Shown: positions 8,987-64,000, counted from the first letter of the stretch. The stretch is DNA of 64,000 nt from Glycera tridactyla (GCA_965644265.1 OZ286462.1:93682001-93746000), one strand, 5' to 3'. A program made the numbers and translations. The notes: generated by a model not told the origin, from the sequence alone.

Positions 8987-9072
<86 letters not shown>
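8898..9072. repeat. (CA)n and (TG)n microsatellites in inverted arrangement
   Basis: (CA)n to about 8950, short spacer, (TG)n from about 8988 to 9072. Confidence 0.9.
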
Positions 9073-9078
<6 letters not shown>

Positions 9079-13400: not shown

Positions 13401-13886
13401 CCAGGTAAACAAACAAGGAGATTGACAAATGTGTTCGGTTATGAACTTCAAACTTAAAATAAGTTCATGTTCGCAGTGCAAATTAGTTGTGACATCCACC
13501 GCTACTTCCACTTGCTAACCTTCATGTTTTTTTCCCGTCAACTTGTGTTCAGGTTGTTTGTTAGCAATGCTTGCAGGGAAAAATAAATCATCCAACAACC
13601 CTACCAACCAACCAACCAACCAACAAAGATACCCACCAATGTGATCACACTTGTGATGGACGTGGTACTCAGTACTGATGATTTCAAACAAACTTTTAGT
13701 CACGGGAGGCATATATTATGCCAGTGGCTACAACATGAGATTCTAGCCGAACCAACAAATTAACCAACCACCCGACCATCCAACTAACACATCATTGCAA
13801 TATCAGCATCGGGGGCACATGCACTTCAGAAGTCCCCAGTTTGACCTGCAGAGAAAACCAGTTGTTGCCATGATCATGATGCTACC

Positions 13887-43500: not shown

Positions 43501-46500
43501 CACGTGACAGTGAATAATAATAAAAATGCCTGTGATATGTTGAGTCTTGTATGTATAATGTATCGGCATAGGAACACTTTTGATTTGGTGTTATGTTTTA
43601 TCAAGAGATCAGAATTATGTCTGCAAAGTGTCCGTCCGCTACAAAAAAATACCATGGAATGACCCTGATCAATAACAGATGCAGGGTCCTTCTAAAAGTA
43701 ATAGTATGAATCAAAAAGAATAAAGGTCCACTCCAGATGACCTGTTGGTGCAATGAAGGGTGGGCAATGGGCTATCAGCGACGGGGAGTCATGGAGATAC
43801 ACTGCCATCAACAAGTACAGTCGAACAGGGGACCATCTCTCTATGAAGGCCATTGAAAGTGGTTTGTTTGTTTGTCTGTTTGGGTTTAACGTCCTTTCAA
43901 CCACCTTTGGTTATATCAGACTGAAAAACTGAAAATGCTGACAAAAAGAGGCACCACTGCCGGGGTCCGTCCCTACTCTTTGGAAAGACAGCAGTGGTTC
44001 TTTTACGTGTATACAGGAAAAGACTCCTATAAACACGGCCAGTCTTTGATATCCCAGTCGACATGCACTGGGTTAGATGCGACTGTATAAATACAACCCC
44101 TGATGAATTGGCTTGCAGTTTCCATTGGGTATATCGGTGGCGTGTACGATCATTGTTGGTCGGTATCTGGGAGCTGGTGAGGCAAGGAACGCTGTCACTG
44201 CGGCTAGGGTCGCCATCACCGTAGCTGGTAGGTGAAGATTTATTACATTATGCGTGGTGGGATTGGCTGATTGGTTGGTTGGTTGGTTGGTTGGTTGGTT
44301 GGTTGGTCACATGACTATGCCTGTGTCGGGTGTTTGATTGTTCGGTTGGTTGTCTGATGGCTAGTTGATGGCTGGTTGACTAGCTTGAATGCTCTTTGTT
44401 TATCTCCACTTGGTTGGTTGGTTGGTTGGCTGGTTAGTTGGTTTACTATCTGGTATGGTGATTGCTTGGCTGGTTGGCTGGCTGGTTGGCCACCTTGTGC
44501 TTTGGGTGTCCGTAATTGAATGAATGACCTGGCTAGTAGTTCTCCGAAGGACATTTCGCTACAGCGCGAATACAGGAAGTGGTACCGTTGTCTGAGCAAT
44601 AGAACACAGGTCCATTTATTTGACGGTAATTCGAAATTTCTCCCCAATTCGCCTGAAATTCAATCGGTTATCAATTGATATTCACTTAGAAAATACGTGG
44701 CATTTACTCCGATTTTGATCGACATCCCCCTGACATTTACTTGAATCATCATTTATTCGATGTATTTGCTTAAGGTATTCGCTTAACATTGACTCAGTGT
44801 TGACTTGGCATTCACTTTATACTCACCTAGAGTTTACATATTTACTTCCTTCAGCTCACCCAGATGCCGTAACCCAAACGAACTGTTAATATGCCCTTTT
44901 TCCATCAGAGACGGTACTGTTTTCACTTTGGGCTTCCCACCAATCTAGATATTACTATCGTTGATTTTACGGAGGTATTCGCCGTGATTTGACCATGTCA
45001 AACACACATGTTTCGTGAGCTACCATTTGTAAACGATCGCTATTGAATCATCAGAATTGAACTGAAATGCTTGAAAAACATGTGAAACGTGTGAGAAACA
45101 GTAGTGTTTGCGTGAAACGTTGCTAAATTCGGATATCGTAGATTACTGACTGTGTGAGATTGTTTGAAACGAAAAATATATTATTAAAAGCAACGTACGG
45201 CGGATAAATAGAGTGCCATTACCGGGGAAACCCCTCCGTGACGTCATAACAGCTAGCAAACATGGCGCACAGGGAAGAAGTTGCCATTCGATCGATAGTT
45301 CACTGTTTCTGGCAGATTCACACAATTTATACATGGGTTATACACAGATGGATATGAAAGACTTCATTTCATCACCAAGACGAGTCACAATGCGCATATC
45401 CACCGGTAAGTCGCTCCGTACTAGGGATGATGAAGTTTCTCACTGCTTGCCATTTAACATGTGAGCGCACGCAGTCCGAGTTCGACTTCATCCATCTGGC
45501 TAGTGTTCGGGAACGTTTGGCTAGTGGTCGGCTAGTGGTCGGCTAGTGGTCGTTCTCATTTGCATGCGGTCCGGTAATGTTCGGCCGATGTTCAACGATT
45601 GTCATCATCATCTCTCTCCCCCTATCTCCCTCCCTACCTCCCTCCCTACCCCTCCCTCCCTACCCCTCCCTCCCTCCCTCCCTCCCTACCTACGTACCTA
45701 CGTACCTACGTACCAACCAACCTACCTACCTTCCTACCTACCTACCTACCTACCTACCTTTTCCCCTTTTAAATTACCACCTCTCCACTGTAAATCGACG
45801 ACCATTCTTCTTTTTGAAGAACTTTCTTGTTTCTTTTCTTTTCAAGTGATTATGGGAGTCATCTTCGGCGGCCTGTTCATCCTTTTGAAAGATTCTCTCC
45901 CACGTCTTTTCAACGACGACGAGTGAGTACCCTATCCAGTGGTATTCCTATTAGAAATTAAAATCCTGAGATCGCCCAGAATACAATCAAATGTGATGGT
46001 TTCTATAGTTCTAGGATTCATAGGGTTTGTAAAGATATCACATATGATGCTTGTTAGTTTAGCGTCCTTTCGACTTTCCTCAGAATACATACGAAGCCAT
46101 GGGGCAGGCAGTCTCAAGTTAGTTATAGACAATTTTCTAAAGATTGCTTCATATAGCACCATAATACTTTATTGATCTCGATGTAATAAAGATAAGGGTC
46201 ACGTTTATATCTAATCAAGCACAACCAATCATGTGAACTACGCGGTATGTTACCGATGGCATATTCAAATGTTAGACCAGAACTAAAAAATTACCAAGGA
46301 ATCCAAATAATAATGATTGGAATAATATCCATGACATTCCAACTCATACCAACATCTATCTTCTAAAAGTGAATGTAGATATATGTTTTTACCCATGAAA
46401 AGATATAAGATATGGTATATACAGGCATGGTATTATTCGATCACATGTCTACTAACATCCAATAAGATTCGACAGTGTAGCAGTTTTTATTTCATTAGAG

Positions 46501-49254
46501 TGATCAATTAATGTTTCGACACATAGATGACGGAGTCCACTGTATATTGCAAGTTCGCCGAACTCAAGTACTGGGGGTTAGCAGAGAAGTGCATTTTTAC
46601 ATAATATTCGGTGGAACCTGTCTACAAAGAGCGCCCTTGGTCGCTTTGAATTGTGGTTTTGGTAGACAGGTGGTCGTCGCCGACTGGTGGTCTTTGTAAA
46701 TTACACAATCAATCAACGGTACCTCGAGGGCCAGCAGGTGATATTTTGTTGTCAGGAGAATCAACGAAGGACATATTGAGTGTCTTTTCCCCTAACTTGC
46801 TTTTCCAGAGATGTTCTAGAGCTGACGTCACAGGTGATACCACTGCTTGGAGTCTATACCGTGTTCGACGGCATCGCAGTATGTAGTACTCCTCCTCCCC
46901 TCTTCTTCTTCTTCTTCTTCTTCTTCTTCCCCTTCTTCTTCTTCTTCTTCTTCTTCCCTCTTCTTCTTTCCTTCCCCTCTTTTGCTCCTTCTTAGTCTTC
47001 GTATTATCTTATTTCACCTTCTCTTCCCACCCTCTTCTCTCCTTATCATTCCTCTCCAGTATATACGTTTTCGCCTTCAGTTTTTGACTCTTCTCTAATC
47101 CCTAACCACAATCACCACCACAATCACCGCTACCATCACCACTATCATCACGACCACTGTCACTACAATAATAACCCCACTACCAGAAGCTCTATTACCG
47201 ACACGACGAAGACGACGACGACGACCACCACCACAGCCATCATCACTGCCATCACCATAAAAACCACCACAACCACCACGACCATGAAAACCACCACCAC
47301 TAACATCACCACCACCACCACTAACATCACCACCACCACCACTACCATCACAATAACAACCCCACTACCACAAGCAGCATCATCACCACCACCACCACTT
47401 CATTATCATCATTTTGAAAACCTCCAGAATACATTTGTTAGTGGATGTTGTTTTAGTGTGTATGTGGCGGTGCTCTGCGTGGCGGAGGGAAGATGTATAT
47501 CGGTGCCATTGTGATCTCTGTAGGCTATCTGATCGGTATGGGGGTTGGCCTGCCTCTCATGATGCTCACATCTCTCGGCATCACAGGTGGGTGTTCCGCA
47601 TCACTACTACCGCACTACTCTCGAATCACTACCGCAATATTTTTTCTTCACTACCACACCATTTTCCCATCGCTAGCGCAACATTTTTGCTTCAATGGCA
47701 CACCATTTTCCCATCGCTTGTGTAACATTTTCGCTTCACTGGCACACCATTCTTGCAATACTACCCCTACATTTTTGCTCCACTATCACACCATTCTTGC
47801 ATCACTACCACATTTTCACTTCACTAACACACTGTTCTTGCATCACTACTGCAACATTTTGCTTCACTTCCACACCATTCTTGCATCACAACCGCAACAT
47901 TTTTGCATCACTACCACACAATTCTTGCATCACAACCGCAACATTTTCGCTTCACTAACACACCATTCTTGCATCACGACCGCATCATTTTTGCTTGGCA
48001 ACCACACCATTCTTGCATCACTACCACAACATTTTTGCATCACTTCCACACCATTCTTTCATCACTACCACAATATTTTTGCTTCACTAACACACCATTT
48101 TGCATCACTTCCACAACATTTTTGCTACACTAACACACCATTTAGCATCACTTCCACACCATTCTTGCATCACTACTACAACATTTTTGCTTCACTACCG
48201 CAACATTCTTGCCTCACTATAACACCATTCTTGCATCACTACCACACCATTCTTCCATCACTACTGCATTCTTCTTCGTATGCTAGTGATGATCAATGGA
48301 TGACACCTTGCCTTTGCTGAAGATGACGTCAACAGATCGGCCCTTGGTAAGCACAATATAGATAGGTCAACAAACCATCTTGCGGTGTGCTGAATTTTAA
48401 GGGGATGGATCACCTCTTGGAATGCCGAAGGTTGGGCTGCAGTTAAGGCCGATAGGTCATCCCTCGGTATGTTGAAGGTGAGGTCCATCTTAATGATATA
48501 TGTGATATACTGGGTTGTGTTGCAGGCCTGTGGTCAAGCTTAGCCGTGACCATTATAATAGACAGCTGTGTATTGCTGGCGTTAATCCATCAATTCAACT
48601 GGAACAACCTTGTGGATGAGGTGATGTATATTCTCTCGTTATCACCTATCACTCTCAATTAACGGCCATCACCACCGCCATCACCACAATCACCATCACT
48701 ACCGCTACCACCAGCAACACTACCACCACTACCACAACCACCGCCACCACCATGGCTTACACACCACCACCACCGGCAACTACCACCATTATCACAACTG
48801 CCACCGCCACAATCACCACCACCACCATGGCATTACAACACCACCACCATCATGACCAGCAACTACCATCACCATCATCCCTTCATCCGAATTACCTTCA
48901 ATCACCTTCACCATCATCACAACCATTATCATTAGCCCAACTACGACCACATCACCACTACAATCACCATCACCACCAACAACCACCACCTTCACAACTA
49001 CCACCAATCGCTAACACCACCACTAGCAACACCACCGCTGCCATCACCGTCACCGCCTCCACACTACCACTACCACCACCGCCTTCCTATCCCATTTGGA
49101 AGAACACTACGATTGTCCCCTCCAATACAAGCATTCAACGACTTGTCGATTGTTTTCCAGGCCAGACAGCGTACCCACCCAGACACCATTTTTGAGGGAG
49201 ATGAGGACGAGGAGGCGCCTCTCCTTCCCAATAAAACACATAATCCCCGCAGAG
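21842..49254 (+). CDS. SLC47A: SLC47A/MATE-family multidrug and toxin extrusion transporter (18 exons reconstructed; 3' end unresolved)
   Basis: Phase-compatible GT-AG exons: 21842-21935, 29856-29971, 31292-31393, 31995-32063, 33000-33048, 33480-33579, 36304-36346, 36966-37010, 37750-37847, 38341-38438, 39654-39764, 40514-40581, 44119-44227, 45847-45922, 46809-46878, 47457-47586, 48526-48620, 49161-49254. MATE motifs LELDAVALA, NVTGISVALGLSSACDTLFSQ, VPSMLMICIEWWAFEVG, LAAQSII, GRYLGAG, GGALRG.GK..IGA, GLW. Confidence 0.92.
29856..29971 (+). CDS. SLC47A: MATE exon (..LFPGGFTFHLKALFVIGWPI)
   Basis: Acceptor tttcag, donor |gtgagt; matches the N-terminal L+AL..LA.P segment of MATE1. Confidence 0.8.
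30200..30880. repeat. Tandem duplication of a ~345-bp unit
   Basis: ACACAAGTGGTCTGCCCC...GAGATCAGTCAAAACAG occurs at about 30200-30545 and 30546-30880. Confidence 0.9.
31117..31183. repeat. (ATC)n microsatellite
   Basis: Direct reading. Confidence 0.95.
31292..31393 (+). CDS. SLC47A: MATE exon (TIIQITEYLFAGVALIFTGQIGTLELDAVALANS)
   Basis: 102 nt, phase 0/0, GT-AG. Confidence 0.92.
31508..31610. repeat. (GT)n microsatellite in MATE intron
   Basis: Direct reading. Confidence 0.95.
31995..32063 (+). CDS. SLC47A: MATE exon (VMNVTGISVALGLSSACDTLFSQ)
   Basis: 69 nt, hallmark MATE motif, GT-AG. Confidence 0.95.
33000..33048 (+). CDS. SLC47A: MATE exon (FFGSDNKKLTGTVLQK)
   Basis: 49 nt, ttgcag|...|gtaagt. 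Confidence 0.9.
33130..33210. repeat. (CA)n microsatellite in MATE intron
   Basis: Direct reading. Confidence 0.95.
33480..33579 (+). CDS. SLC47A: MATE exon (SLLIMFLACLPCLAIQLNTESLLVLVRQDKDVA)
   Basis: 100 nt, phase 1/2, GT-AG. Confidence 0.92.
33641..33818. mobile_element. MITE family A copy in MATE intron
   Basis: Same TIRs and TA flanks, 61 bp after the exon ending at 33579. Confidence 0.85.
34660..36260. repeat. 26-bp minisatellite, ~60 units, two variant domains
   Basis: Left units GCAGGGGATACTCACATGTCCTGTTT; right units GCAGGGAACACCCACGTGTCCTGTTT. Confidence 0.95.
36304..36346 (+). CDS. SLC47A: MATE exon (MAGHYMLICMPGVM)
   Basis: 43 nt, phase 2/0, GT-AG. Confidence 0.88.
36966..37010 (+). 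CDS. SLC47A: MATE exon (FFFIYCPIVKFLQSQ)
   Basis: 45 nt, KFLQSQ motif, donor gtaaga. Confidence 0.9.
37750..37847 (+). CDS. SLC47A: MATE exon (NIVYPSMIFGLVSIAINILLHYIFLWILHMGI)
   Basis: 98 nt, GT-AG. Confidence 0.92.
38341..38438 (+). CDS. SLC47A: MATE exon (GSALAQTISYTVMCLLNVAYILITGVHKPVWT)
   Basis: 98 nt, GT-AG. Confidence 0.92.
39031..39288. repeat. 128-bp tandem duplication
   Basis: TTACAATGAAGTAATCAC...ATATTGGGGA repeated at 39031 and 39159. Confidence 0.9.
39654..39764 (+). CDS. SLC47A: MATE exon (GWSTAIFYDWGPFMMAVPSMLMICIEWWAFEVGVLLA)
   Basis: 111 nt; conserved EWW.FE motif. Confidence 0.95.
40130..40310 (-). mobile_element. SINE family copy (diverged)
   Basis: GAAAATGCTGA..GGCACTGCTGCCGGG..AAAGACAGCAGTGGTTCTT shared with the other copies. 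Confidence 0.55.
40514..40581 (+). CDS. SLC47A: MATE exon (GALGTTSLAAQSIILQFDNIWYS)
   Basis: 68 nt, donor gtaagt. Confidence 0.93.
41121..43665. mobile_element. Non-autonomous DNA transposon, 18-bp perfect TIRs, 4-bp TSD TGAT (Sola2-like by inference)
   Basis: TGAT|GGGTCATTCCATGGTATT (41121-41138) ... AATACCATGGAATGACCC|TGAT (43648-43665). AT-rich interior with diverged ~370-bp direct repeats (about 42620-43400). No transposase ORF seen. Confidence 0.8.
43863..44080 (-). mobile_element. SINE family copy in MATE intron
   Basis: High similarity to 2535-2728 including the (AAAC)n tail. Confidence 0.65.
44119..44227 (+). CDS. SLC47A: MATE exon (FPLGISVACTIIVGRYLGAGEARNAVTAARVAITVA)
   Basis: 109 nt, VG..LGAG motif. 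Confidence 0.93.
45847..45922 (+). CDS. SLC47A: MATE exon (VIMGVIFGGLFILLKDSLPRLFNDD)
   Basis: 76 nt, donor gtgagt. Confidence 0.9.
46809..46878 (+). CDS. SLC47A: MATE exon (DVLELTSQVIPLLGVYTVFDGIA)
   Basis: 70 nt, GT-AG. Confidence 0.92.
47457..47586 (+). CDS. SLC47A: MATE exon (CVCGGALRGGGKMYIGAIVISVGYLIGMGVGLPLMMLTSLGIT)
   Basis: 130 nt, GG.LRG.G motif. Confidence 0.93.
47630..48270. repeat. ~22-bp minisatellite with alternating variants
   Basis: CATCACTACCACACCATTCTTG / CATCACTACCGCAACATTTTTG units. Confidence 0.88.
48526..48620 (+). CDS. SLC47A: MATE exon (GLWSSLAVTIIIDSCVLLALIHQFNWNNLVDE)
   Basis: 95 nt, GLW...NW motif. Confidence 0.92.
49161..49254 (+). CDS. SLC47A: MATE exon, cytosolic C-terminal loop (ARQRTHPDTIFEGDEDEEAPLLPNKTHNPRR)
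   Basis: 94 nt, ttccag|...G|gtaagg, phase 0/1; acidic dileucine-like EEAPLL motif. Confidence 0.75.
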
Positions 49255-49300
49255 GTAAGGACCCGTGGATGGAAGAGGCAAAGGCATAATTCATAATATA

Positions 49301-49494
49301 CAGTCGAACCTGCTCTAAAGACCACCTCTCTATAAAGACCACCTCTCTATAAAGACCACCTCTCTATAAAGACCACATGAGCTGCGACCGTGGTAGTATT
49401 TTCAACACTAAATGACCTCTCTATAAAGACCACCTGCCCATAAAGACCGCTTTTTGATGCGACCGAAGGCGGTCTCTATAGACAGGTTCAACTG
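49301..49494. mobile_element. MITE family A copy
   Basis: Same TIRs and TA flanks; extra AAAGACCACCTCTCTAT unit. Confidence 0.85.
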
Positions 49495-50086
49495 TACCTG
49501 CCTTATTCATGCTAGTTCAGGATCTATTGAATACTCAGAAGGGGTACACAGAGGTACGTATCTGGTTGGTTCCAACATTTAGTAGAAACTTGTATTGAGA
49601 ACGTGTATTCATACGCCTATGGGGAAGTTGCTCTTCTCTAAGTAAACAGGTTCATAAGGTTATCCTAAATGAGTCGGTGAGTGAAATCCCTGACACTCTA
49701 ACTTCAATCCCATCATCTCAAAAACGAGCAGTTGATCCTATACTGGTATTTTGAGAGAGAGAGAGAGGAGACGAAATATAGTGCCATAGCAAGGCAGCAT
49801 GGGCCTATCTCAACTTTCTCTTTGAAGACTGCTTCTGTGGGAAGCTCACCAATCAATTATTGAACAGATAGGAATTTATTCTAGGCCCAATGGCCCTCAT
49901 TCCTCCGCTGGGTGTCATCTCAATCATGAAACTAAAAAGCGAGTAAAATATGGGGAAGGTATTTGGTACATTGATCGGACGAGCCGGGGAACCCAGTGTC
50001 GTTACTTCCAAATGTAGGTTTATCGGGGATTTGATGGTATGTTCCATTCCATGAGTATTTACACGCCCTGTGTTCTATATCTGTGA

Positions 50087-50255
50087 TTTGTTTGTTTGTT
50101 TGTTTGTTTGTTTGAGTTTAACATCACTTGATCCCGCTTGGGTTATATCGGAGTGAAAACAATGAAAATGCTGAAAAAAAGAGTCACTGCCTGCCGGGGG
50201 CCGTCCCTACTCTTTGCAAAAGACAGCAGTGGATCTTTAACGTGCGTAAAGGAAT
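50087..50255 (-). mobile_element. SINE family copy, truncated at the palindrome
   Basis: Tail and body match the family up to ACGTGCGT; the remainder is absent. Confidence 0.6.
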
Positions 50256-50257
50256 AT

Positions 50258-50408
50258 AGCAAGACTAAATGGCCGTGAAGTAATAACGCATTACCAAACG
50301 AGGTCCGCATTTCGCCGAATGTCACGAGGCCGAAGGCCGAGTGACATTCGGCGAAATGCGGACCGAGTTTGGTAATGTGTTATTACTTCACAGCCATTTA
50401 GTCTTGCT
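50258..50408. repeat. 151-bp near-perfect palindrome (68-bp arms, 4 mismatches, 15-nt loop)
   Basis: AGCAAGACTAAATGGCCGTGAAGTAATAAC...GAATGTCAC | GAGGCCGAAGGCCGA | GTGACATTC...GTTATTACTTCACAGCCATTTAGTCTTGCT. Confidence 0.92.
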
Positions 50409-50667
50409 TTTATCACATGGATTCGGTGATGAAATGTGTTCTGGAAAGGATTTGTTAAAGAAAAACATGGAAGATCTCCGGACGTCTGGCGGCCAACAAC
50501 GACAATGCGTAGTAATACAAATTGCTGCGTCAGAAGGTCGGGAGCTGCCTCGAACAATAAAATCAAACTTACCAGGTGAAGAGTCACGTGAAAGAAGGAT
50601 ATTTGGTAGGAATATGTTATTTTGAGAGATTTCCGTTAGCCTTAAACATTCGTAGGACACGGGAAAT

Positions 50668-50720
50668 GGGCGTCCGAGCAGTCACTGCCGCAGTGTGGCG
50701 CCACCACCGCACCGGCACCT
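50668..50720 (+). repeat. Left imperfect terminal inverted repeat of ISL2EU element
   Basis: GGGCGTCCGAGCA...TGGCG...CACCGGCACCT aligns in three blocks with the reverse complement of 63679-63734, with a ~3-nt indel. Confidence 0.82.
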
Positions 50721-50824
50721 CTCCCGCGCAGGCTGAGATACTACAAACGTAAACAACTGCTAACAACTCATAGATACTCATCGAGCTATTTTAAGCCACT
50801 CAACAACATCACCCAGACACAGGC

Positions 50825-50922
50825 ATGGATAGGTACGATGGCTGGTGTGTGCCGGAGTTGAAAGGTGAATTGAAGAAGCGAGGGGCTAAGACTTCAGGTC
50901 GGAAGAAGGAATTGATTGAGAG
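50825..50922 (+). CDS. YqaJ gene exon 1 (SAP domain)
   Basis: ATG at 50825; W..PELK.EL..RG..TSG.K.ELI.R pattern; donor AG|gtgagt. Confidence 0.85.
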
Positions 50923-53900
50923 GTGAGTTTGTCAGGAGGTGGGCGATATTATGGTGCTTTACTGCTATGTGTGATAGGATCTCAACAGAGAGTAGAAGGG
51001 GCTGTTTCCCACCTCGAAATAGACCGATGCAGCCCATGAACAGATGAGCCAATTGCCGGATGCGCCTGTGCCCCAAGAGGGGCAGGTAATATTTTGAATG
51101 AATGGGAGGGGGGGGGGGACAAGAGCTTCTTGACAGGAGACAGCCTGCTTCCAGCCTGAGGGACCACTGTTTGAGAGCCTATAGTCGAATATACCTCTGA
51201 CTAAAGACCACTTGTTTCATGAGACTGGTTTTAGTGATATCTAGGATGGTATCTCTTCACAGATTTCACTGTGTCCCTGCATTGTTTTATACAGTGGAAC
51301 CTCCTGCAACTAGACCACAGGCACATCACCAAAATGTGGTCTCTCATCAGAGGTATTTTTGACAATGTCAAATAGGTAGTCTCTTATCAGAGGTACATTG
51401 GACTATATATCAAATAGGGATGCCACACTGTGAAAATGATCTCATGTCAGATGTGGTCTCTAGTTATCCCCCCCCCCCCCCCACTGAAGGTGGGAGGGGG
51501 GAGGGCATACTGGATTCAGTCTGATTTTGTTCACATGGGATAGAATGGAAGGTTCAAATCACTCATGACTGTTGCATGAATAGCTATTCGAAATATGATT
51601 CTATTTGGACTCCTACATTGTGTTTTACCAAACTGTTTGGCCTAGAAAACTATCAAAATTCTCACAAGCCCTTTTTGTTGAAGTAAGCATCCATCTCCTG
51701 TTTCCAATCTGGGTGTTTACCCCGCCCCCCTTGCAAGGTCAGTCTGCCAGATTGAAACCTCTGGTCAGCCTGATCAAGTTGCAGGTTGTATTGTACCAAC
51801 AGCAGAGATGCTAATTGATTGACAATGGGGGGGGGGGGGGGAACAAACATGCCACAGTAGATTTACAGGATGTTTGAGATGTGTTATCAATTGCCTTCTA
51901 TCCAGACATATCCTCCTCAAGAACACATTAAACCTCTTGAGGATAATCTCAGCTGCATATTAGCAAATACACAGCTTTTCTGATTTGTGTTTTGGGATTC
52001 ATATTTTACTGTTGATCATGCTGTCTCAGAAGTGGTACAGTAAAACTTATCTTACGAGACCGCCCCAAAGGCTAATGAAAAGTGGTCTCTCAAGACAGGT
52101 GATCTCTCATTGAGTGTATATTTGACTATGTCAAATAGAGAATAGCCGATAAAGAGCGGTCTATCATTAGAGGGTGGTCTCCCAAAAGAGGGGTATCCCA
52201 AGACAGGTTTCACTGTATTGTGTCTCATCTCATGTCAACAAAAGATGACCAATAAACCTCTTGCATTTGGAATATATCCTGTGTCTCAGTTCTTAATTTT
52301 TAACAGGGTCCCAATCGAATGTTTCATCCTGCTGTTCGTTTTTTCAGGCTTGAAGCTTATGACCGCAATGCTGATTTTGGGGCCGAATCCACTTCAGCTG
52401 AGAGTGTTTGGGTCATGAAGACTGTTGACCCAATTTTATACAAAGATGTGACAGCCAGCAGCGTGCTCCCTCCTCTGAGTGAATGCACCATCAGTGACTA
52501 CCTGAAGCCACTGCATACCAGGCTGGGACGAGTTTGCCGTGAACTTTATGATGAAAGGTGAGATATCGTGGTTTGCTGAGACTTGAGTTCTTGAGAATCA
52601 TCAAGCGTGGATTGGATTGCCATTTTGGAGAATGCAAGTAATCATTGAGAAGCTTGATTTTTTGGAGAATGCTTGAATTTTAACTGACATTGCCAAGGGA
52701 TCACACATTCATTGTATACGGTATTTAGTGATATATGTATGGATGATGACAGGACATATTTCCTGAACAGTCGGATCTATCGATACGCATATGTACATTG
52801 AAAACAAGAGACTGTACAGATTCAAATTTTGTTAAATCTCCTGTATGGTGGACATTCATGCAAGTCAATGTAGCTAATGAATTTTTGCACTGCTAGCGAG
52901 TGTGTAGTGGTGATAATCAGAAGTAATGATGGCTATGAGAAGGTTCAATTACCAGTGACTCGGCTGTGTGCTTCAGATCTCAAAATAGTCGGGAAAAATG
53001 TGTCCTATGCCCCTTTACAGCATGTTGATGTAAGTACATGTAATTGCAGTTTTTAAGGTTAAAACGACAGAGTGAAATGATTGTCTTAGTCATGAACAGA
53101 GTGCTTGATAAATGCTTATTCTCTGAATTTCTGTATGAGCACTAGATTTCAGAGATATCTACACGTGCAATCAAAAATTGTATTAGGCAGCCGTCCTCAA
53201 TACTAACATACAGTGAAATCTGCAATGAGAGACCCCTTGATGGGAGACCACCTCTTTGTGGAGACCGCTTTTTTTCAGGGCAGCATTTCTATGTGACATA
53301 GTCAAATATTCCTCCAAAGAGAGACCACCTCATTTGGGAGACCGCTTCTGTTGACATTAAGGGTGGTCTCTTACTGCAGGTTTCACTGTATGCCATCAAT
53401 ATGTTCCGTATCTTCATGTTGAGTATGTATAAGTGTGTCTGATTTTTCAGCTACTTCCACATGAAATAGGTGTTTCTAGTTATGGCACATATCCCTCGTC
53501 ACACTGGGATTATTCCATTCAAAAAAAGGGTGGATGAACAGATTCATACAATGCCCCCTAAATCAACAAAAAATTTGCACTATGCCATGTTGAGTGTACC
53601 CATTTTGGAACATTTTTTGAAGAAATGCCCCATTTTCTCAAATTTAAGGGGCCAATGCCCCCATTTCAGAAAATCCTGGATGCACACCCTTGAAAACTAC
53701 CCCCCCCCCCCCCCGCACTCATCTCTGAATTATTAGCTACTTCCTTACCCCACTTCCCTCCCCCAAAAATTGAATATGTTTAGACCCCCCCCCCCATCAT
53801 TAAAATTAAATAGAATGACCTACACCAAATCCTGCATTCACCTGTAATTCAGTAAGAGGTTGGTTAGTTTTTGGTGTGTCAGGTTACAGCATCCTATTCA

Positions 53901-56900
53901 CACCACAAACCCATGCTCTACCTCTATCAAATAGGTATTTTTTCAATAGTTTTGAGTCATATACTCAATCCAACAACTTTCAGTGCCTTGGTGTGTGAGG
54001 GGGGTGGCTTTCTACTCACCCCTGTTTATAATATGGGTGACTCACTGGTGAGTGGGAAATAATTGGTTGACATGGTAACTAAGATGAGGGGGGGGGGGGG
54101 GGGGTATTACTTGTTCATTCTATTATATCATAAACATGTATGTGATATCTGCTATTTCCAATGTCTCTTGAATCTCAGCCATGGGATTAAAATGCTGATG
54201 TGAATTTGTAATAATCACATACTGCTATCTGAGGTATTTTTATTGAAAAGTGATTGGCTGAATTACTCATTTTGCACATTGCGGCACGTAACTTCAGTCA
54301 GGCAATTTGGCTGTTTCTGGTTCAACTCATGTCAGCTCCATTTGTGCTGTATTATGACGCCCATGTAATAAGCATGGGTGGGATCATTCAAGAATCTTCC
54401 TTCTGCTTTCTCAACATAAGGTGAAAATTTGTGAAATTCAGAGACACTCAAGGTGTCATTTCTGTTATTAGAAAACAATGGGCGAACTGAATTGATCAAG
54501 AATGGTGATTCTTCTTCCTGCACCATGAGCAAATGTGAATCCTATACACTGAGTCAATTTGATTCTTCTATAGTTCACAGCGCTCACATCTTTCAATCAT
54601 TGATTAAAATATTGATCACTGATTGATTTATATAACTTAGTGCTAGATATTAGCCAGATAGCCAGGGGTTAGATCTATTCCCACCTGGCTACAATTTGTA
54701 TTTGATAAGGCGAAAATATGTATATGAGTGTATATTGGTGCACAAGTATCCAACTGTGTGAATGTTTTACCTCATAAATGCTTTGATCTCTGTGCAATGC
54801 CTATGTTACAACTTGTGATGTGGCAAAAATAAAGTATTTTGAATTTGAATTTGAATTGACTAGTCTTTAACCAATCTTGCTGAAAGGAATTACAGTCGAA
54901 CCTCCTCTAAAGACCATCTCTCTATAAAGACAACCTCTCTATAAAGACCACCCTTAGCTGCGACCTTGGTAGTATTTCCAACACTGAATGACCTCTCTAT
55001 AATTACCACCTCCCCATAAAGACCCCTTTTTAATGTGACCAAATGCAGTCTTCATAGAGAGGTTTGACTTTACTCTGAGGCAAATCGTGACATTGCTTAT
55101 TTCGTCACAGATAGCTCATGTAGTCACGAGAAGTTTTATGATTGTTGGCTGCAAGAAATGATTTCTCATACCAGAAACTCAATACACCCGTTTGAAATGG
55201 AGGTTTGGGAAAAGCTTGATGTATTTGGCTAAAGATGGAATGGCCGCTTTATCCTGATTTGCAATAGAAAGTATCGTCCCAGTGCCGACACAGTGCTGTG
55301 TAATCTACAGGCAATGAATATTGCCACAGATCAAAAAGATCATGACCATGGCAGTAGTATTTCGAACTTTGTGTAGATGAAAGACTACCGTACTCATCAG
55401 ATTGACCATGTGAATAGATATTTCACACATGTGGTGGACTTGGATAGAATGATGCTGTCAACATTCAAAAAAATACAAGGAGAACATATTTTCCAACCAA
55501 GTTTTTATTCATCGATGATATTAGTGCCCATCTGCACCAAAGATATTGTGGCAGCATATGTTGGAATATATTCTGTAGGCATCAACAGTCATTTCGTAAC
55601 AATTTCAACACATCAAATACCAACTCATCCACAGGTACAGGATTTCATTTACACCTATGTCCTGTCATTCTGCGTCATGAACTACACCCATCAATCACAG
55701 CTGGGACAGAAGCACCTTTGTCCAATTGGATTATATTATCATTCACTGGGATGCAAACCATACATACAGACCTCTCTTGGGAGACCACCCCAAATGCCAA
55801 CCGAAGTGGTCTCTCAAAAGAGGTGACCTCTCATTGGAGGCATGCGACTATGCCAAATAGAAATGAACCAATGAAGAGCAGTTGCTCGCTCAAAAGAGGT
55901 TTCACTGCAGTATCATTCCATCGGGTGGATGGAATTATATACCCATGACCAAATAATGGCAGTATCATACCCAGAATGGGCAGTGTAGCATCAACACAGT
56001 GGTCAGCAGCCACCACAAAATATCAGAGTTCAAGGTCATAGATACAAGTGTAAAGGTCACAGGGTCAAAATGTCATGCCTATGAGCACCCACTCCTCATT
56101 GGTAGTCAACATACCCAAAATGGGCAGTGTGTCATCAACCAAAACATACTTAGCAGCTGATGTTTGGATGCTGGACTCCCACCTAGACCCACAAGAGAAA
56201 TGTTCTGCAAAGTTGGCATGCACGGACAGACAGATGGATGGTATAGTTGAGGTTTAGCAGCATGTATCAACCCAGAGGATTCTCTTGTGGGCATCACTCT
56301 CACAAACCCTGAACACAAGATGATGGAGAACCATATAGGATGTCAAGTGGAAGTAGCTGATAGCTCAGACTGTCAGAAGTGATAGTCATTCTGTACAACG
56401 GTCAAATGCCATTTTGCCAACACTGCATCTCTAATTGCAGGTTTGTGCGATTCATGCGTTGCGCCCCAAATGATGGAATCACTTACTTCAAGTCCCAATG
56501 CCGGGCAAAAATGAGACGGACCACAGCGTATGACATTGACATTGCTGTTGATAGCCAGGGTCACATTGTTGAGGCCCAATGTGAATGTGCTGCAGGAATG
56601 GGACCACATGCCCATTGTAAACATATCCGTGCTACATTCTGTGCCCTACTTGACCGTAGTCTAGGAAAGTCAATGAACATAGAGCTGGCTTGTACTGAAA
56701 GGATACAGTCATTTCATCGACCGCACCGACTCCATGATGGTTCACCAGTCAAATCAGATTCACTTGTCCTGAACAATGCAAGTGCGGATAACCTTATCTT
56801 TGATCCAACACCAGTATTTGCCCAAGATTTATCATGTGCCTCAACCATTCTTATGAATGCCACTATAAATTTTGCCGCAAGAACCAATAAGAAACCAGCT

Positions 56901-57689
56901 CTTTTACAGATGTGTCCACCTGCAAATATTTTTGCTTCACTTCACGATCACGATTACTTGGCCATTTCTCCTGATTCTCAGTTTCTTCAAGAGCAATGCC
57001 TGACACAAATAACAGAGGCTGAAGGGAACAAAATTGAAGAAGGAACAAGAGGTCAAAGCAAAGTAGTGCTTTGGCATATGGAGCGTGCAAAGCGCATGAC
57101 TTCTTCAAATTTTGGGAAAATATGCAAGTGCTCAGAGTCTCGAAAGGGAAAACTTGCACACGACCTTCTCAATGCCACTGAGATCACTGCAGCCCCACTC
57201 AAACATGGCAAGAAATATGAACCAGTTGCGATTTCATCGTACTGTCAAATCACAAATTCAATTGTTCATGCTAGTGGTCTTGTTGTTAGTATTGATAGGC
57301 CGTATTTGTCATGTTCCCCAGATGGTGTCATCAATGATGACCTATTTCTTGAAGTGAAATGTCCCTACAGCTCAAGAGAGAAGCCAATCAACCCTCAAAC
57401 AGTACCATACTTGGAAGAAATTGTGGTAAATGAGAACAAATCATTAGCCCTCCAGAAGAGTCATGATTATTACTATCAGGTACAGGGGGTGATGCACATC
57501 ACCAAGAAGAAACTCTGTCACTTGGTTGTATACACATTTAAGGAGGTAGCTATCATTGAAGTACCATATGATCAGGACTTTATCAAAAAAATGCTCGAGG
57601 ATCTTGACAATTTCTTTCATGATCATTTCCGTATGAAATTTCTTCAACAACATTTGTACCGAAATACACATTCATATAACTGGGATTAG
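50825..57689 (+). CDS. SAP domain + SWIM zinc finger + YqaJ (lambda exonuclease-like) protein, 518 aa; join(50825..50922,52348..52557,56441..57689)
   Basis: Three GT-AG exons, phase 2/2, 98+210+1249=1557 nt with no internal stop. Exon 1 MDRYDGWCVPELKGELKKRGAKTSGRKKELIERL is a SAP consensus. Exon 3 has SWIM CECAAGMGPHAHCKH and YqaJ motifs RMTSSNFG, HGKKYE, SCSPDG..LEVKCP, YYYQVQG. Confidence 0.9.
52038..52215. mobile_element. TA-flanked MITE family B (CAGTGAAACC-type ends) nested in YqaJ intron 1
   Basis: TA|CAGTAAAAC...GGTTTCACTG|TA with GGTGGTCTC motifs. Confidence 0.72.
52348..52557 (+). CDS. YqaJ gene exon 2
   Basis: Acceptor ttttcag|G, donor AG|gtgaga; reads (R)LEAYDRNADFG...CRELYDE(R) and completes the SAP helix. 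Confidence 0.85.
53211..53388. mobile_element. MITE family B copy nested in YqaJ intron 2
   Basis: TA|CAGTGAAATC...GGTTTCACTG|TA with GAGACCACC motifs. Confidence 0.75.
54893..55070. mobile_element. MITE family A copy nested in ISL2EU (YqaJ intron 2)
   Basis: TA|CAGTCGAACC...GGTTTGACTT|TA, diverged. Confidence 0.75.
56441..57689 (+). CDS. YqaJ gene exon 3 (SWIM + YqaJ exonuclease)
   Basis: Acceptor ttgcag|G; long open frame (track ORF 56379..57689) with SWIM and PD-(D/E)xK nuclease motifs. Confidence 0.93.
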
Positions 57690-59612
57690 AGCGCTTCAGC
57701 TGGGTTGGGACATTCCAGTCATGTGGAAAATTCAGCCAATTTACTCTGGCAGGACCAGAAAACTATGAGCCGAAAGATTTGTAATTCACCATTCGTACCG
57801 AAAAAAATGAAATCATCTGAATTCAGCCAAATCATTAAATCAATAGGCACTGTGTAATTTACCATTTTTTATAGCATGAATTCTTTCATTAAAAGTGGAA
57901 ATGCCCAACTCTTAGTTACAGCAGAAATTCTTGAGGGTGGATTTTTGCAATCTACTCTTCCCATGGGAGAGTGGCTGAATTTCTTTTTCGTGAAGACTCA
58001 ACCTGCACACCTGAAAAATCAACCTACCCTGCCTATATGAGCAAGTCATTTATGATCATTTTCCACCTGCCCACCAGGTAAATCAACCTGCCCTGCAAAT
58101 ACAATTCACTAGAGACAGCCAGTCAGTGTTATTTGGAACTGATAGTCTCTGTTACATGCGTTTATCTTCGGTCCATTATCCGTATCTCTGCCACTGAGAG
58201 GATGATAGATAACTAAGTCAGGTTCTTGATCAGATGAATGATGGACTGGGCCCAGTCGAGTGGGAGTAGTTTTGTTTATTTAAGCAAATTGCATGTAGTA
58301 GTAAGCCAGGAGAATCTGTCCCCCAAGCCCACCTACAACCGATCAGACTCCCCTGCATCATTTCCAGTCTACAGTGAAACCTATCTACAAAGGCCTGCTT
58401 TGCGCATCAGAAAGTGACCCTAATAAGCAGGTGGTCTATATCAAGGGGTCATTTATTGATAGTCCTGCTGGGAAGTTTCTGAATCATATTTCCCAGATCA
58501 ACGCTCTCTCTCTCTAGTGTAATTACTGGCTGTCCATACTTTTTCAAGCAGACACATATATACAGGAATAGCATTAGTACATGAACATGAGCATGAGCAT
58601 GCAGATGTGAGATAGATTGCTGAGGGCAGCAGGGTGTCTGTCACTGAACGACAGTCAAAATTGTAGACCAGAAGATTGCTGTTGAAAACTTGGATTTTTG
58701 TAAATAATAATGATATGTATGACTGCCATGAAAAATCCCCTGATGCAATATCAGGAAACATTAGTTATGCTTGATAGATGTTTAAATTTAAGGTGTAAGT
58801 TGCCACCGTGAGTTGAACATTTGATTTTTAACACTGTTGGGGCAGATGTTGAAGTTGCCATGATATTGAAAGATGTCAGTGGAAAACAGAAAGGTTTGAG
58901 CATTGGAATCTTCTTTGTACATGTATATAATATAGTGGATGTTGTCACAGATAGCATAATCATGACTGAACCCAAGCATGTGGTGGGATAGAAGTGTAAC
59001 AATCCAGGAGTGAGTACTGATTAATTGATTGAATGACTGATCAGAGCCTAATTTAATGATATATATATATAGGTATCAGTGTGTCTGAGCTGACTGCTTT
59101 GCCCCTTGAAACCTCTGGATTTTTTTTCTATCCTGGGTCGGTGCAAAATATGTTTGCAGGGGGTAGATGACATGACATATTTAGTTCTTCAGCCTAAAGT
59201 TGTACCTGCTTCAGAGACCACATGCACACAAAAAAAACACCTGCCAACAAGGACACCCTCAGTTCTAACCATGAGAGTATTTTCTATGGTGAGTGACTTC
59301 ATACAAAGGTCACATATGTGACTAAGGGTGGTCACTCAAACCAGGTTTGACTGTACATTTCCCGGTTTTGGGGTACGGGCTAGGCGGTCAGCAAACCAAA
59401 CATGGTGGTCCCTGGCCGGATTTGGGAGGTGGTCGCTATGCAGAGGTCAAATATAGTGAAATATGAGTCGCTCCCGGTTACGGCTGGTCGTTAACAAGAG
59501 GTGGTTGGAGAAGGGGGGGGGGGGGGGGGGGGAAGATCAATCTTGATCATCATTTGATGAACAAATACAATAAATTTTACCTTGAACAAACAGAGATTTG
59601 TTATTTTTTAAT

Positions 59613-60775
59613 TCAGCTGTCAGCAGGGACAATGCATGCACGTAAATTGCACAACATGAAGCATGCAAATACAATCCTGCTGCCAAGTATGGTTTCCTGT
59701 TCATTCATTGGTGACGCCAAGATTTTATACGTCTTTGCAAGACCAATGACACGCTCAACATGTACACGCTTGCTTGCAATTTTTCTGTCTCTGATTACCT
59801 CTTTGTTGGACAACTGGTTCTTCTTTTTCAAGAAAGTCGGTATATTGATCTTGACATCGAATGGTGCAAAAATATCCTGAACATTGAACCCCTTGTCACA
59901 CATTATAGAGTCACCAGGGTCACATTTTTCAGGCAGCTGACTTCTTTCCACCAAAAGACGATCACTGGCAGAGCCACCATACGCTGGGGGTATGTGTGAG
60001 GTCAGTCCACCGGGAGTGATACCCACCACAGACTTGAGAGTGTTACGATTTTTGTAGGTTGAGTAAGTAACTTGCTGAGCAGTCGGCTTGCTGGGTCGCT
60101 TCACTGGAACTTCAACTCCATCAATGATGACCCTAGTGGATGGGAACTGACGTCCAAAATCTGTGGGCATGTAGAATTTAACCATATCCTTCGAGGGCCA
60201 GATGTTGACCTTACTCCACTGACAATACATAAAGTTGATCCAGGTCACAAAAATGTTTGATACAGAGAATTCCGAGATGTTGAAGAAGTAGGCTAACTCT
60301 TGATTTGGCGTATGTAGACGGAGTTTGATGAGGGTAATTAGTAGTTGGTTCTCTACAGATACCTTCACAGGAGTTCTCCATCTGTAGTTCAGACTATATG
60401 CTGCTGGGCCTAGGGTTTGCAGCACATAGTCAAAATGGTCCGCATCATCAAGTCCTGTGAAATAGTGTAGAGATTTCTCGTCAAGTTTGAGATCTTCAAT
60501 CGATATACGTGACCATCGAGGTGTCTGACTTGAACTGTCAACTGGAGGAGGTGTAGGTTCAGGTTCAGGTTCATCACGTAACATTTCATCTTCATTGCTG
60601 ATCACCATCTCCTGAACATCAACATCAAAATCATGATCAGGTTCTTTGGATTTGATCCTTGAGCGAACTTCTGCTCGTTCTCTACGCTGGCATGATGATG
60701 GTGACAATTCCATCACCCATGCAAAGCTTGACGGCACAGCATCTCTTTTGAGAATTTTCCTCTCACGGGCTCCAC
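59613..60775 (-). CDS. Transposase exon 2 (THAP end, HTH, DDE core)
   Basis: Acceptor tttcag|GT at 60775; open frame to TGA at 59613-59615. Confidence 0.93.
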
Positions 60776-62008
60776 CTGAAATTGAAAACCAAAGAGCAAA
60801 TTATTAGTGTATGTATTCAGCTGGCTTGAGTAATTATGAGAGATGTGAAAATCTAGGGCTCTACATTGCTACATGTGGGTAGCCAATTGCTACCAAATTT
60901 ACCCTCTGCCTCCCATAACTTGAAAGTTAGAAGCCAGGCGCCCCTAAATTTTGAGAGGAAGTAATTGGCAATGTATTGACTGGCTACCAAAATTTTGCAC
61001 TGGCTACCACAAAATTCCAACTTAGGAGCCAGCTGACACCAAAATAGTTTGGCCAATGTAAAGGCCTGTATATTTTCACATGGATGTGGCATTTTCAGTG
61101 GAGTAGCAGGTCTGACCTTACACTCACTTAACACACACACATACACACCATGCATGCATACATACAAACACCCCTCCCCGACTCACCTGGGTAAAGAATA
61201 TTCAACCAGCCCTTCTGCCAGAAGGGGGGGGGGGGGGGGGGCTACACCCTAAGGAGGTGCGGGACAGCTAATGTATTATCAGATATAGCAATCTCTCCCA
61301 TTCTAACTGAACCAATTTCCAATCCAATTATTTGTGACTTTCATTACTTAATCTGCTCTTCCCTAATTTTTTCATGACACTACATCCCATCATATATTGC
61401 CACAACCCCCCCCCCCCCCCCCCCATCCCACCGGCATTTCCATTATAGTTGTTTACTGCATATTTCTTGAAAAATTGAATACCTAAAAATGAGATGTCAT
61501 TCAGGTCTATTCGAGAAAAATATGGTGAAACCTGTGACAAGGGAGTACCCTGAATATCAAATGATGACCATGATTGTATTTTCCACAAGGAACCTCTAAA
61601 CTGAGACCTCCTGTCAACTTTTTAGCTTGACCAGATCATAATTTACATCACTGACAGAGAGACACAGGAAGACTGACAGATAAACAGACAGACAACGAAA
61701 GAGACAGACAGACAAGCCCATGTGCATCCTGTGGGTTNNNNNNNNNNNNNNNNNNNNNNNNNNNNNNNNNNNNNNNNNNNNNNNNNNNNNNNNNNNNNNN
61801 NNNNNNNNNNNNNNNNNNNNNNNNNNNNNNNNNNNNNNNNNNNNNNNNNNNNNNNNNNNNNNNNNNNNNNNNNNNNNNNNNNNNNNNNNNNNNNNNNNNN
61901 NNNNNNNNNNNNNNNNNNNNNNNNNNNNNNNNNNNNNNNNNNNNNNNNNNNNNNNNNNNNNNNNNNNNNNNNNNNNNNNNNNNNNNNNGACACACAGACA
62001 GACCCACC

Positions 62009-62052
<44 letters not shown>

Positions 62053-63261
62053 GATAGGGACGGACTGAAAGACTATTAGGCACACAGGCAGATACACATT
62101 AACACAGATGAGAAGGTTCAGATACACAGACAGACAGAGGGGAGGGGGGAGGTCAGTCTTCAGTCTGTTTACCCAATGGGCTAAGACATGGCAATTATAT
62201 AGTTAATGATTATACTGATCGCATGGGAAGGAGAACAATGATAATAACAATAGTAGTAATAATAATAATGATACTAATCGAAATAAAAAAACAATGAAAA
62301 TGAGCTATGTGAATTGAGGTACAATTTGGGATATGCAGGAGGACAGGTACAAAAGTTGAGAAGGGCTGGATCAAGTTCTACATCAACTACCTGAAGGGAA
62401 GCTGAAGAAAACAGTTAATGTAATGCCTGGCAAGAAGTCTGGATTCACACATCTGAGTTCTGTAATGTAACCATTTTTATGACCTTTGCTGTCCCAGTTT
62501 TCTAATGAACACCAGATGGGTCGATATCATTGGTGATATTGTGGTCAGTGATGCTGCCCCCTGCTGGACATCCTGTTGATGTGTTAATGGCTTGTGTAAG
62601 CAGAGGGTGATTCGGGGAAGGGGCTCAGACTAAGAGCATGGACTGGTTATGAGTTATACAGTCAAACCTCTCTATAAAGGCCATCCTGAGCTGCAACCAT
62701 GGTAGTATTTTCAATGGTGAAAAACCTCTGTTGAGACCACCTTCCCACAAAGTCCACTTTTTCGCAACTGGAGGTGGTCTTTATGGAGAGGTTTGACTGT
62801 ATTTAGGATGGTCTCTGGTCGCAGATTTATTTGCGTTCCTGCACTGTTTTATACAGTGGAATCTGCAACGACACCACAGGTACATCACAAAAATGTGGTC
62901 TCAAAAGAGGGGGTCTCTTATCAAAGGTATATGTGACTATAGAGTGAAACCTGTATTAAGCAACCACTATATTCAGCAATCACCTGTCGTAAGCTACCAC
63001 TTTTCAATATGCCGTCAGAGTATTTTTCTCCTGTATTAACAAACCACCTGTCTTAACCAACCACTTATTCATTCCCTGGCGGTGGTTGCTGAATACAGGT
63101 TATTCTGTACATCAAATAGGGATCCCACACTGTGAGATTTGTCTCTTGTCAGATGTAGTCTCTATCTTTCACTGAACTGTTGAACTTGCCCAAGTATGAT
63201 TCATACAGAGTGCCCATGGATGTTCAGTGTAACCTATCAACAAAGACCACTCTTGGTTGTG

Positions 63262-63338
<77 letters not shown>

Positions 63339-63575
63339 CATGTGCATGGGTTATTGAATAAACTCACCATGTAAAGTTTCTTCACCAGGCAAGTAGTCAT
63401 CTGGTTTGAAGTGCTGATAGCAAACAATCATGTATGGCTTGGGCTCCCACCGGGCACCCTGCTTGTTGGAGGCACGACGAATGGCATGTACCCACTCCTG
63501 CTTCACAATCTGGCTGGCAGGAAACTGGTGTCCGCCTCTGTTGCTGCATCCTGGCACACAACACCTGGTAGGCAT
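59613..63575 (-). CDS. THAP-HTH-DDE (Harbinger/ISL2-family, DDE_Tnp_4-like) transposase, 456 aa; complement(join(59613..60775,63368..63575))
   Basis: Two exons (208+1163=1371 nt, phase 1). THAP C2CH: CCVPGC..W..C..HF in exon 1, LKRDAVPS in exon 2. HTH region LLITLIKLRLHTPNQELAYFFNIS. Catalytic triad IIDGVE / IMCDKGF / RVHVERVIG intact. Confidence 0.92.
61738..61988. other. Assembly gap inside the transposase intron (other gaps: 5479-5634, 9338-9555, 15795-16276, 18302-18645, 20158-20787, 37967-38122)
   Basis: Runs of N. Confidence 0.98.
62659..62799. mobile_element. MITE family A-related copy nested in transposase intron
   Basis: TA|CAGTCAAACC...GGTTTGACTG|TA. Confidence 0.75.
62942..63107. 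mobile_element. TA-flanked MITE nested inside another repeat in the transposase intron
   Basis: TA|GAGTGAAACCTGTATT...AATACAGGTTATTCTG|TA; the empty site is visible in the paralogous module near 51410. Confidence 0.7.
63263..63335. repeat. (CA)n microsatellite near the transposase intron donor
   Basis: Direct reading. Confidence 0.95.
63368..63575 (-). CDS. Transposase exon 1 (THAP zinc finger)
   Basis: MPTRCCVPGCSNRGGHQFP...WVHAIRR...VCYQHFKPDDY; donor G|gtgagt at 63367. Confidence 0.9.
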
Positions 63576-63678
63576 TATGTCTAGCTCCAGTGATCAAAGA
63601 TGATAACAAATACAGACAGGAGACAGCTGGTAGTCGCTAGGGTAAACAATAACAGTGCCTCGTTGTGGGAGTAACGCT

Positions 63679-63734
63679 AGGTGCCGGTGTGATGGGCACG
63701 CCATCTATCGGAACACGCGGATGCACGGAAGCCC
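63679..63734 (-). repeat. Right imperfect terminal inverted repeat of ISL2EU element
   Basis: Reverse complement reads GGGCTTCCGTGCA...TGGCG...CACCGGCACCT; followed by the AT duplication. Confidence 0.82.
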
Positions 63735-64000
63735 ATTGTATCAAAATAGCTGCAAAGCATGGGGCTACATTCTTGGGCAAAGCACTACGTTGGTTGCGTA
63801 GGAAGCGGATTGATCTGCATACTTTTGACCTGGTGAAGCAGTCGGGTCAAGGGAGCTTGACCCTGCGAATCAACTAATGGAACATGTGAAGCTTTGCTGC
63901 AACAAACATGGATTTATTCAAATATATCTGCCGTGACATCAGGTTAGTCATCAACGAGAACAATGCGCAAACATTCGACAATACATTCATGTCGTATCTA

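Follow-up and report, generated by a model that had tools for sequence, protein, structure and literature searches.

A probable structurally complete ISL2EU transposon of about 13 kb with a swollen non-coding interior in Glycera tridactyla

Introduction

ISL2EU transposons form a group within the PHIS (PIF/Harbinger-ISL2EU-Spy) superfamily that is found in animals only, and their hallmarks are an AT duplication made at an A|AT|T target, GG termini, and the pairing of a transposase that joins THAP, helix-turn-helix (HTH) and DDE domains with a second, YqaJ protein (PMC4482050, PMC4122938). Here we describe a locus of this kind in a 64,000-nt stretch of Glycera tridactyla DNA (GCA_965644265.1 OZ286462.1:93682001-93746000), hereafter the window, in whose positions coordinates are given unless another locus is named. 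Positions 50668 to 63734 hold a nuclease gene on the + strand and a transposase gene on the - strand, enclosed by a pair of inverted ends, and we judge it probable, at roughly 0.8, that this segment is one structurally complete ISL2EU copy of autonomous type, with the mechanism proposed below, a swollen non-coding interior and retained function.

The survey of Han et al. (2015) lists 25 ISL2EU families of 746-7,117 bp, with a stated mean of ~4,840 bp for autonomous elements and with two intact open reading frames (ORFs) in 12 families; the published ranges are 6-259 bp for the terminal inverted repeats, 426-576 amino acids for the transposase and 477-647 amino acids for the YqaJ protein (PMC4482050). 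The same domain set occurs in ISL2EU-4_CGig of Crassostrea gigas, IS4EU-2_DR of zebrafish and IS4EU-1_BF of amphioxus (PMC4482050). ISL2EU is among the least studied of the eukaryotic cut-and-paste groups: in the searchable literature we found no experiment on any ISL2EU element, nor any on why these elements carry a lambda-exonuclease-type nuclease where Harbinger has a Myb-like partner.

Results

Two convergent genes with intact reading frames

To build the gene models, we ran tblastn with homologues of full length and searched splice combinations exhaustively. We find a nuclease gene of three exons that encodes an open frame of 518 amino acids and, converging on it from the opposite strand, a transposase gene of two exons that encodes an open frame of 456 amino acids. 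Their parts, together with the spacer between them and the one assembly gap, are as follows, where MITE denotes a miniature inverted-repeat transposable element.

50825-50922, + strand: nuclease exon 1, SAP domain, residues 1-33 (Pfam SAP, E=4e-11); residue 1 of the homologues aligns at 50825, and the donor is GAG|gtgagt
50923-52347, + strand: nuclease intron 1, 1,425 bp, with a diverged nested MITE at 52036-52217
52348-52557, + strand: nuclease exon 2, linker, residues 33-103, located by tblastn with homologues P0142, P0177 and P0222
52558-56440, + strand: nuclease intron 2, 3,883 bp, containing two nested MITEs (53209-53390, 54891-55072)
56441-57689, + strand: nuclease exon 3, SWIM-like CxC..CxH motif, disordered linker and lambda-exonuclease-like domain (Pfam YqaJ PF09588, E=1e-16)
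57690-59612, no strand: spacer of 1,923 bp from stop codon to stop codon; it contains three MITE fragments (58370-58459, 59198-59355, 59422-59505) and has a CpG observed/expected ratio of 0.30
59613-60775, - strand: transposase exon 2, end of the THAP domain (AVPSSF), HTH_Tnp_4 at residues 207-254 and DDE_Tnp_4 at residues 287-446
60776-63367, - strand: transposase intron; its 2,592 bp take in the gap, two nested MITEs (61566-61634, 62657-62801) and an (AC)37 run (63263-63336)
61738-61988, no strand: assembly gap, 251 N, length estimated, wholly within the transposase intron
63368-63575, - strand: transposase exon 1, C2CH THAP zinc finger (Pfam THAP, E=5.5e-11)

All three introns of the two genes are of the GT-AG type, with G|gtgag donors and pyrimidine-rich cag| acceptors, and the chosen nuclease model is the sole one among five open combinations that has both consensus splice sites and a homologue-like length. 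Poly(A) signals follow both genes, directly 3' of the stop codon for the transposase (59612-59607) and at 57834-57839 for the nuclease. The preliminary description of this locus had proposed two convergent spliced genes free of stops and frameshifts, and our models bear this out: both frames are open, the splice sites are consensus and all catalytic residues are present.

In the transposase, Pfam recognises DDE_Tnp_4 (PF13359) at E=2.5e-36 and HTH_Tnp_4 at E=1.2e-13, and the D288, D363 and E410 triad shows no variation among the aligned sequences (121, 121 and 120, respectively). The THAP domain is split by the intron, with its AVPSSF motif carried on in exon 2, and the human THAP1 structure 2KO0 aligns to exon 1 with E=0.003; a sequence search found no solved structure for the DDE part. 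The assembly gap begins 1,379 nt after the donor of the transposase intron and ends 962 nt before its acceptor, and no coding sequence adjoins it. Full-length homologues align to transposase residues 1-70 and 68-456 with none missing across the exon junction, which, given the intronic position of the gap, means that no reading frame crosses it. The gap is flanked on each side by simple sequence of GT and GTCT type.

In the nuclease, the catalytic residues E363, D397, E407 and K409 are kept in 120-121 of 121 aligned sequences, and the CxC..CxH ligands C150, C152, C162 and H164 are invariant in all 121. Lambda exonuclease (1AVQ) aligns at E=9e-5 over the GKxYE, SPDG and ExKCP motifs. In an AlphaFold2 model of the exon-3 product (predicted local distance difference test score, pLDDT, 84.6), a disordered linker joins a small beta-plus-helix domain to a nuclease domain with pLDDT >95, and a Foldseek search with this predicted nuclease domain matched LHK-Exo and lambda exonuclease with target-normalised template modelling scores of 0.70-0.77. 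We infer from these alignments and models that the protein combines DNA-binding modules with a domain that is, in chemistry and fold, a 5'-to-3' double-strand exonuclease. The SAP-SWIM-YqaJ architecture proposed earlier thus holds in its SAP and YqaJ parts, both recognised by Pfam; its SWIM part is supported by the motif and by the name that UniRef gives to one homologue, 'SWIM-type domain-containing protein', and the Pfam SWIM model finds no match in the nuclease even at E up to 10.

Element ends and target site

The element opens with GGGCG (50668) and closes with GCCC (63734), giving GGG/CCC termini, and it is bounded by the following features.

50666-50667, no strand: left AT target-site duplication, preceded by A at 50665; the resulting AAT flank is invariant in 8/8 aligned ends
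50668-50720, + strand: left (nuclease-side) terminal inverted repeat, 53 bp, starting GGGCGTCCGAGCAG and ending CACCGGCACCT
63679-63734, - strand: right (transposase-side) terminal inverted repeat, 56 bp, imperfect, homologous to the ends of relatives
63735-63736, no strand: right AT target-site duplication, followed by T at 63737

The A before the left AT and the T after the right AT give an A|AT|T target. We searched for inverted repeats by aligning 47001-50825 to the reverse complement of 63576-64000, with 100 shuffles as the control, and the top alignment is the pair 50668-50720 / 63734-63679, AAT flank included; its score of 28 compares with 23.2 +/- 2.3 in the shuffles (maximum 31), or ~2 standard deviations over chance. 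What confirms the ends is not this statistic but their homology to the ends of related elements at three loci, L001, L002 and L003 (the last from Lingula anatina), which are described below. The AAT flank is present at all six of these other ends, and across the eight aligned ends it is invariant together with a G.G terminus, CCG.GCA and a subterminal ACC.G.AC block ~45 bp inside. The five other distinct ends agree fully in 29 columns, of which the left end in the window keeps 27/29 and the right end 24/29, a count in which a GAG to GGG change of the terminus, common to both window ends, is included among the differences. The exact 9-mer CACCGGCAC is present, within the window, at the two ends alone.

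The left and right ends of each element differ from each other, and these differences recur in the same way in L001, L002 and L003; because they are held in common, the imperfection of the ends is a family trait and not decay. For the same reason we rejected the divergence between the two ends as an age clock. The two start codons are set 157 and 159 bp in from the ends. An AT duplication, GGG/CCC termini, imperfect terminal inverted repeats of ~55 bp and genes starting about 155-160 bp inside their own ends had all been claimed for this locus, and each claim agrees with what we find, the repeats by virtue of being both the best alignment and homologous to the relatives' ends.

A search for a paralogous empty site found no second occurrence in the window of either the last 80 bp before the insertion or the right flank. 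At 50258-50408, ~260 bp upstream of the insertion site, there is a 151-bp self-complementary inverted duplication (90%); it is adjoined by a repeat at 50094-50254 that is also seen at 43862-44019, 2534-2669 and 40128-40237.

Non-coding bulk and nested repeats

The element measures 13,067 bp, a length that is approximate because 251 of these positions are N in a gap of estimated size, and coding sequence makes up 2,928 bp (22%). The remainder consists of introns of 1,425, 3,883 and 2,592 bp (7.9 kb together), the 1,923-bp spacer and the two ends of 157 and 159 bp. The excess size is therefore entirely growth of introns and spacer with nested repeats, not cargo. Passenger genes were considered and rejected, as the ORFs in introns and spacer have no Pfam match and Rfam gives no match either; a scan of the spacer for bacterial-type promoters and terminators stayed at chance level and is irrelevant to a eukaryote.

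Eight nested Tc1/mariner-like MITE segments lie within the element, none of them in exons. The nested copies are 54-88% identical to the MITE consensus and copies outside the element 94-98%, the latter figure being inflated since the consensus was built from the same five outside copies that were then compared. The DNA around the element has a CpG observed/expected ratio of 0.65; within it, the ratio is 0.84 for the ends, 0.47 for the exons, 0.30 for the spacer and 0.23 for the introns.

The MITE family itself is 182 bp long, with the structure TA|CAGTCGAACC...GGTTCGACTG|TA, termini of the form TA|CAGT...ACTG|TA and internal GGTCTTTATAGAGAG repeats, and occupies ~20 loci in the 64 kb, for example 4156-4336, 12021-12202, 19013-19183, 33639-33820 and 49333-49496. 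The 94-98% identity of the outside copies, measured against a consensus made from those copies, suggests recent activity of the family. Homopolymer runs of 10-25 G or C are also concentrated in the element's introns and spacer (51108-61424), which hold 9 of the window's 18 at a density ~3.5 times that outside; these runs could be real or sequencing artefacts. Outside the element, the segment 46901-49048 is C-rich with strongly negative GC skew and contains ACC/CCA-type microsatellites and a 44-bp minisatellite (15 units, 47606-48264); the long ORFs in this segment are spurious and have no Pfam match.

Relatives in other genomes

The nearest complete relative that we recovered is L002 (ENA ERZ25069863, contig ctg9197, locus 9002-14026), a 5.0-kb element that matches the window element in its convergent gene order, in all three intron positions and in its AAT flanks, and whose asymmetric ends are homologous to those described here. 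Its proteins are 65% (transposase) and 52% (nuclease) identical to those of the window element, and at 65% protein identity synonymous sites are saturated. The two differ in their non-coding parts: where the window element has introns of 2.6, 3.9 and 1.4 kb and a spacer of 1,923 bp, L002 has introns of ~0.7, 0.33 and 0.67 kb and a spacer of 80 bp. The terminus of L002 is GAG, that of the window element GGG. The layout of two plus three exons is common to L001, L002 and Lingula, the introns interrupting the transposase at about residue 69 and the nuclease at about residues 33 and 103, so that the exon structure, put forward earlier as unusual, turns out to be ordinary for the family. The nuclease gene called by NCBI in Lingula spans 2.15 kb for 506 amino acids.

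Among the five relatives that we fetched, a YqaJ-type nuclease match stands beside the transposase in 5/5 and a THAP exon is present in 4/5; in the remaining one, L003, no THAP exon was detected for the annotated 405-residue transposase. Hundreds of full-length homologues exist, the best named ones all being animal proteins, and in other genomes relatives are multi-copy, clustering at 90% identity into groups of up to 75 sequences. An exact 24-mer of the left end gave no match in JGI metagenome contigs.

Several of these loci have features of their own. L001 (ENA ERZ25084518, 7787-12773) is a 5.0-kb deletion derivative that has both family ends and an intact transposase and retains only exon 2 of the nuclease. 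L003 (LFEI02000098.1, 14785-16314) carries two copies each of the nuclease-side end (14852 and 16306) and of the SAP exon, in what looks like a partial tandem duplication beside an N. L004 (9010-19319) and L005 (8698-17708), both from ENA ERZ25767047, are paralogous transposase-nuclease pairs with open genes and the same intron positions. In these last two the genes span at least 9-10 kb, with 4.4-5.9 kb between them, which shows that large forms are not unique to the Glycera tridactyla genome. The family end motif, a convincing inverted repeat and the SAP exon were all looked for in L004 and L005 and not found; a marginal AAT|GA pair in L004 (8682/19798), which would give 11.1 kb, scores at chance level. 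These pairs could belong to a divergent family or be domesticated.

Discussion

A proposed mechanism

What is known of the family suggests how such an element may move. The THAP finger and the HTH domain would bind the ~55-bp ends, and the candidate transposase site is the conserved subterminal CACCGGCAC block, which contains GGCA; this is the core recognised by human THAP1 (PMC2879526). The DDE core (D288, D363, E410) would excise the element and insert it at A|AT|T with a 2-bp stagger, giving the AT duplication. The second protein appears to combine a 5'-to-3' nuclease of the lambda-exonuclease type with a DNA-binding SAP motif and a zinc motif resembling SWIM, and it most likely resects DNA ends made during transposition. 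In the version that we prefer, it would resect the broken donor site (or the transposon ends) and so channel repair to homologous recombination; a donor break repaired from the sister copy would then, we infer, restore the element.

Age and selection

Introns (7.9 kb) and spacer (1.9 kb) would have swelled with the eight nested MITEs and lost most of their CpGs while exons and termini were kept, which points to an old lineage still subject to selection for function. With neutral substitution as the only force, the probability that both ORFs remain open is 0.30 when divergence reaches 1%, 0.003 for 5% and ~0 from 8% upwards. Should the decay of the interior postdate the arrival of the MITEs, selection must have preserved the coding sequence and the ends; it could act through continued transposition of the bloated lineage or through host use. 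We tentatively suggest that the lineage stayed functional for a long time while its non-coding DNA filled with host repeats, and that the locus is now either a mobile 13-kb element or a host-retained pair with its ends still in place.

Weighing the evidence

Several points count against the interpretation of 50668-63734 as one complete copy with retained function. Taken by themselves, the inverted ends exceed the shuffled controls by just ~2 standard deviations, which is weak, and a 2-bp duplication arises by accident with a chance of 1 in 16. The right end departs from the relatives at 5/29 conserved positions. The candidate THAP site varies, reading GGTA in L001 and AGCA in L003, so that it is best treated as a lead. 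The argument from age assumes that the nested MITEs diverged after they inserted, and they could instead derive from older subfamilies; equally, the decay may have occurred in ancestral master copies and not at this site. A tblastn search found no second ISL2EU copy within the 64-kb window, the element's continuity runs through the 251-N gap at 61738-61988, and we found no published experiment on the role of the ISL2EU nuclease in the searchable literature.

These points bear in different ways on three other explanations. The locus might be a dead fossil, an old and immobile insertion whose frames are both open by chance and without selection, and the introns and spacer full of diverged MITEs and strongly depleted of CpG, the altered right end and the single copy seen in the window would all fit. 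Yet interior decay of even 5% would leave both ORFs open with a probability of only ~0.003, and no damage is seen in the seven catalytic residues, in the zinc ligands or in the three pairs of splice sites, which makes a fossil improbable. The absence of MITEs from 2.9 kb of exons, compared with eight in 10.1 kb of non-coding DNA, points weakly in the same direction (~2.3 expected, P ~0.1). We regard it as no likelier that the host has domesticated the pair, keeping transposase and nuclease for a function of its own at a locus that no longer moves. Coding sequence kept within an old non-coding interior, the long, host-like introns and the related pairs L004 and L005, whose genes are intact without recognisable ends or SAP exon, are what domestication would predict; a host gene would not need ends, however, and here both are recognisable, with 24-27 of the 29 family-conserved positions, the exact subterminal 9-mer and high CpG, while the relatives are multi-copy in other genomes, with clusters of up to 75 members.

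The explanation that we consider least probable, and very unlikely, is that the scaffold joins two partial copies of the same family across 61738-61988 and that the complete element is an artefact of assembly. The gap is unread and lies in simple-sequence DNA of the kind where assemblers fail. Against such a chimera, L001 and L002, which are uninterrupted, have exactly the order, orientation and splice phase that are found here across the gap, the same kind of GT/GTCT simple sequence occurs on both sides, and on both sides the intron is CpG-poor and carries nested MITEs. We retain the interpretation of a single, structurally complete ISL2EU copy.

Significance

The annotated copy provides material for experiments, as both complementary DNAs can be deduced, both ends are defined and a candidate transposase-binding motif is at hand. 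For specialists, the interest lies in the asymmetric ends with an invariant subterminal block kept across genomes, in the conserved intron positions, and in a non-coding interior that has decayed while exons and ends were preserved. If the element is mobile, it would offer a natural system in which to ask whether a lambda-exonuclease-like protein is a transposition cofactor, for instance through resection of the donor break. Its value is limited by the fact that intact ISL2EU elements are already catalogued in oysters, zebrafish, amphioxus and others, the sole special trait of this one being its non-coding bulk.

Comparison with known systems

Lambda exonuclease, LHK-Exo and YqaJ (PD-(D/E)XK nucleases; PDB 1AVQ, 3SYY) share with the second protein the GKxYE, SPDG and ExKCP motifs, which align residue for residue. 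The Glycera nuclease differs in adding 230 N-terminal residues, comprising the SAP domain, linker, SWIM-like zinc motif and disordered stretch, and the element has no gene for a single-strand annealing partner such as Red-beta. With PIF/Harbinger elements it has in common a related DDE_Tnp_4 core, two genes and a preference for AT-rich targets (PMC4482050). Harbinger elements make 3-bp TWA duplications, pair the transposase with a Myb/SANT or MADF partner and have a transposase without THAP (PMC4482050, PMC4122938); these features are absent here, where we find a 2-bp AT duplication, a SAP plus YqaJ partner and a THAP domain.

The correspondence with ISL2EU is closest. A DDE_Tnp_4 domain with its D-D-E triad, THAP and HTH domains, a YqaJ-type second gene, an AT duplication in A|AT|T and GG ends are all present, and the AT duplication, GG termini, length of the inverted repeats, 456-residue transposase and 518-residue YqaJ protein all lie within what is published for the group, supporting the identification in the preliminary description of a full-length, two-gene ISL2EU element. 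That description had also singled out intactness and size as unusual. Intactness is not, given the 12 catalogued families with two intact ORFs and the hundreds of full-length homologues. Size is: at 13,067 bp the element exceeds all 25 families of Han et al. (2015), whose maximum is 7,117 bp and whose autonomous mean is ~4,840 bp, in a comparison that sets a single copy with nested insertions against family consensus sequences. The window element is thus an additional member of a described group, ordinary in exon structure and intactness, whose size is non-coding bloat.

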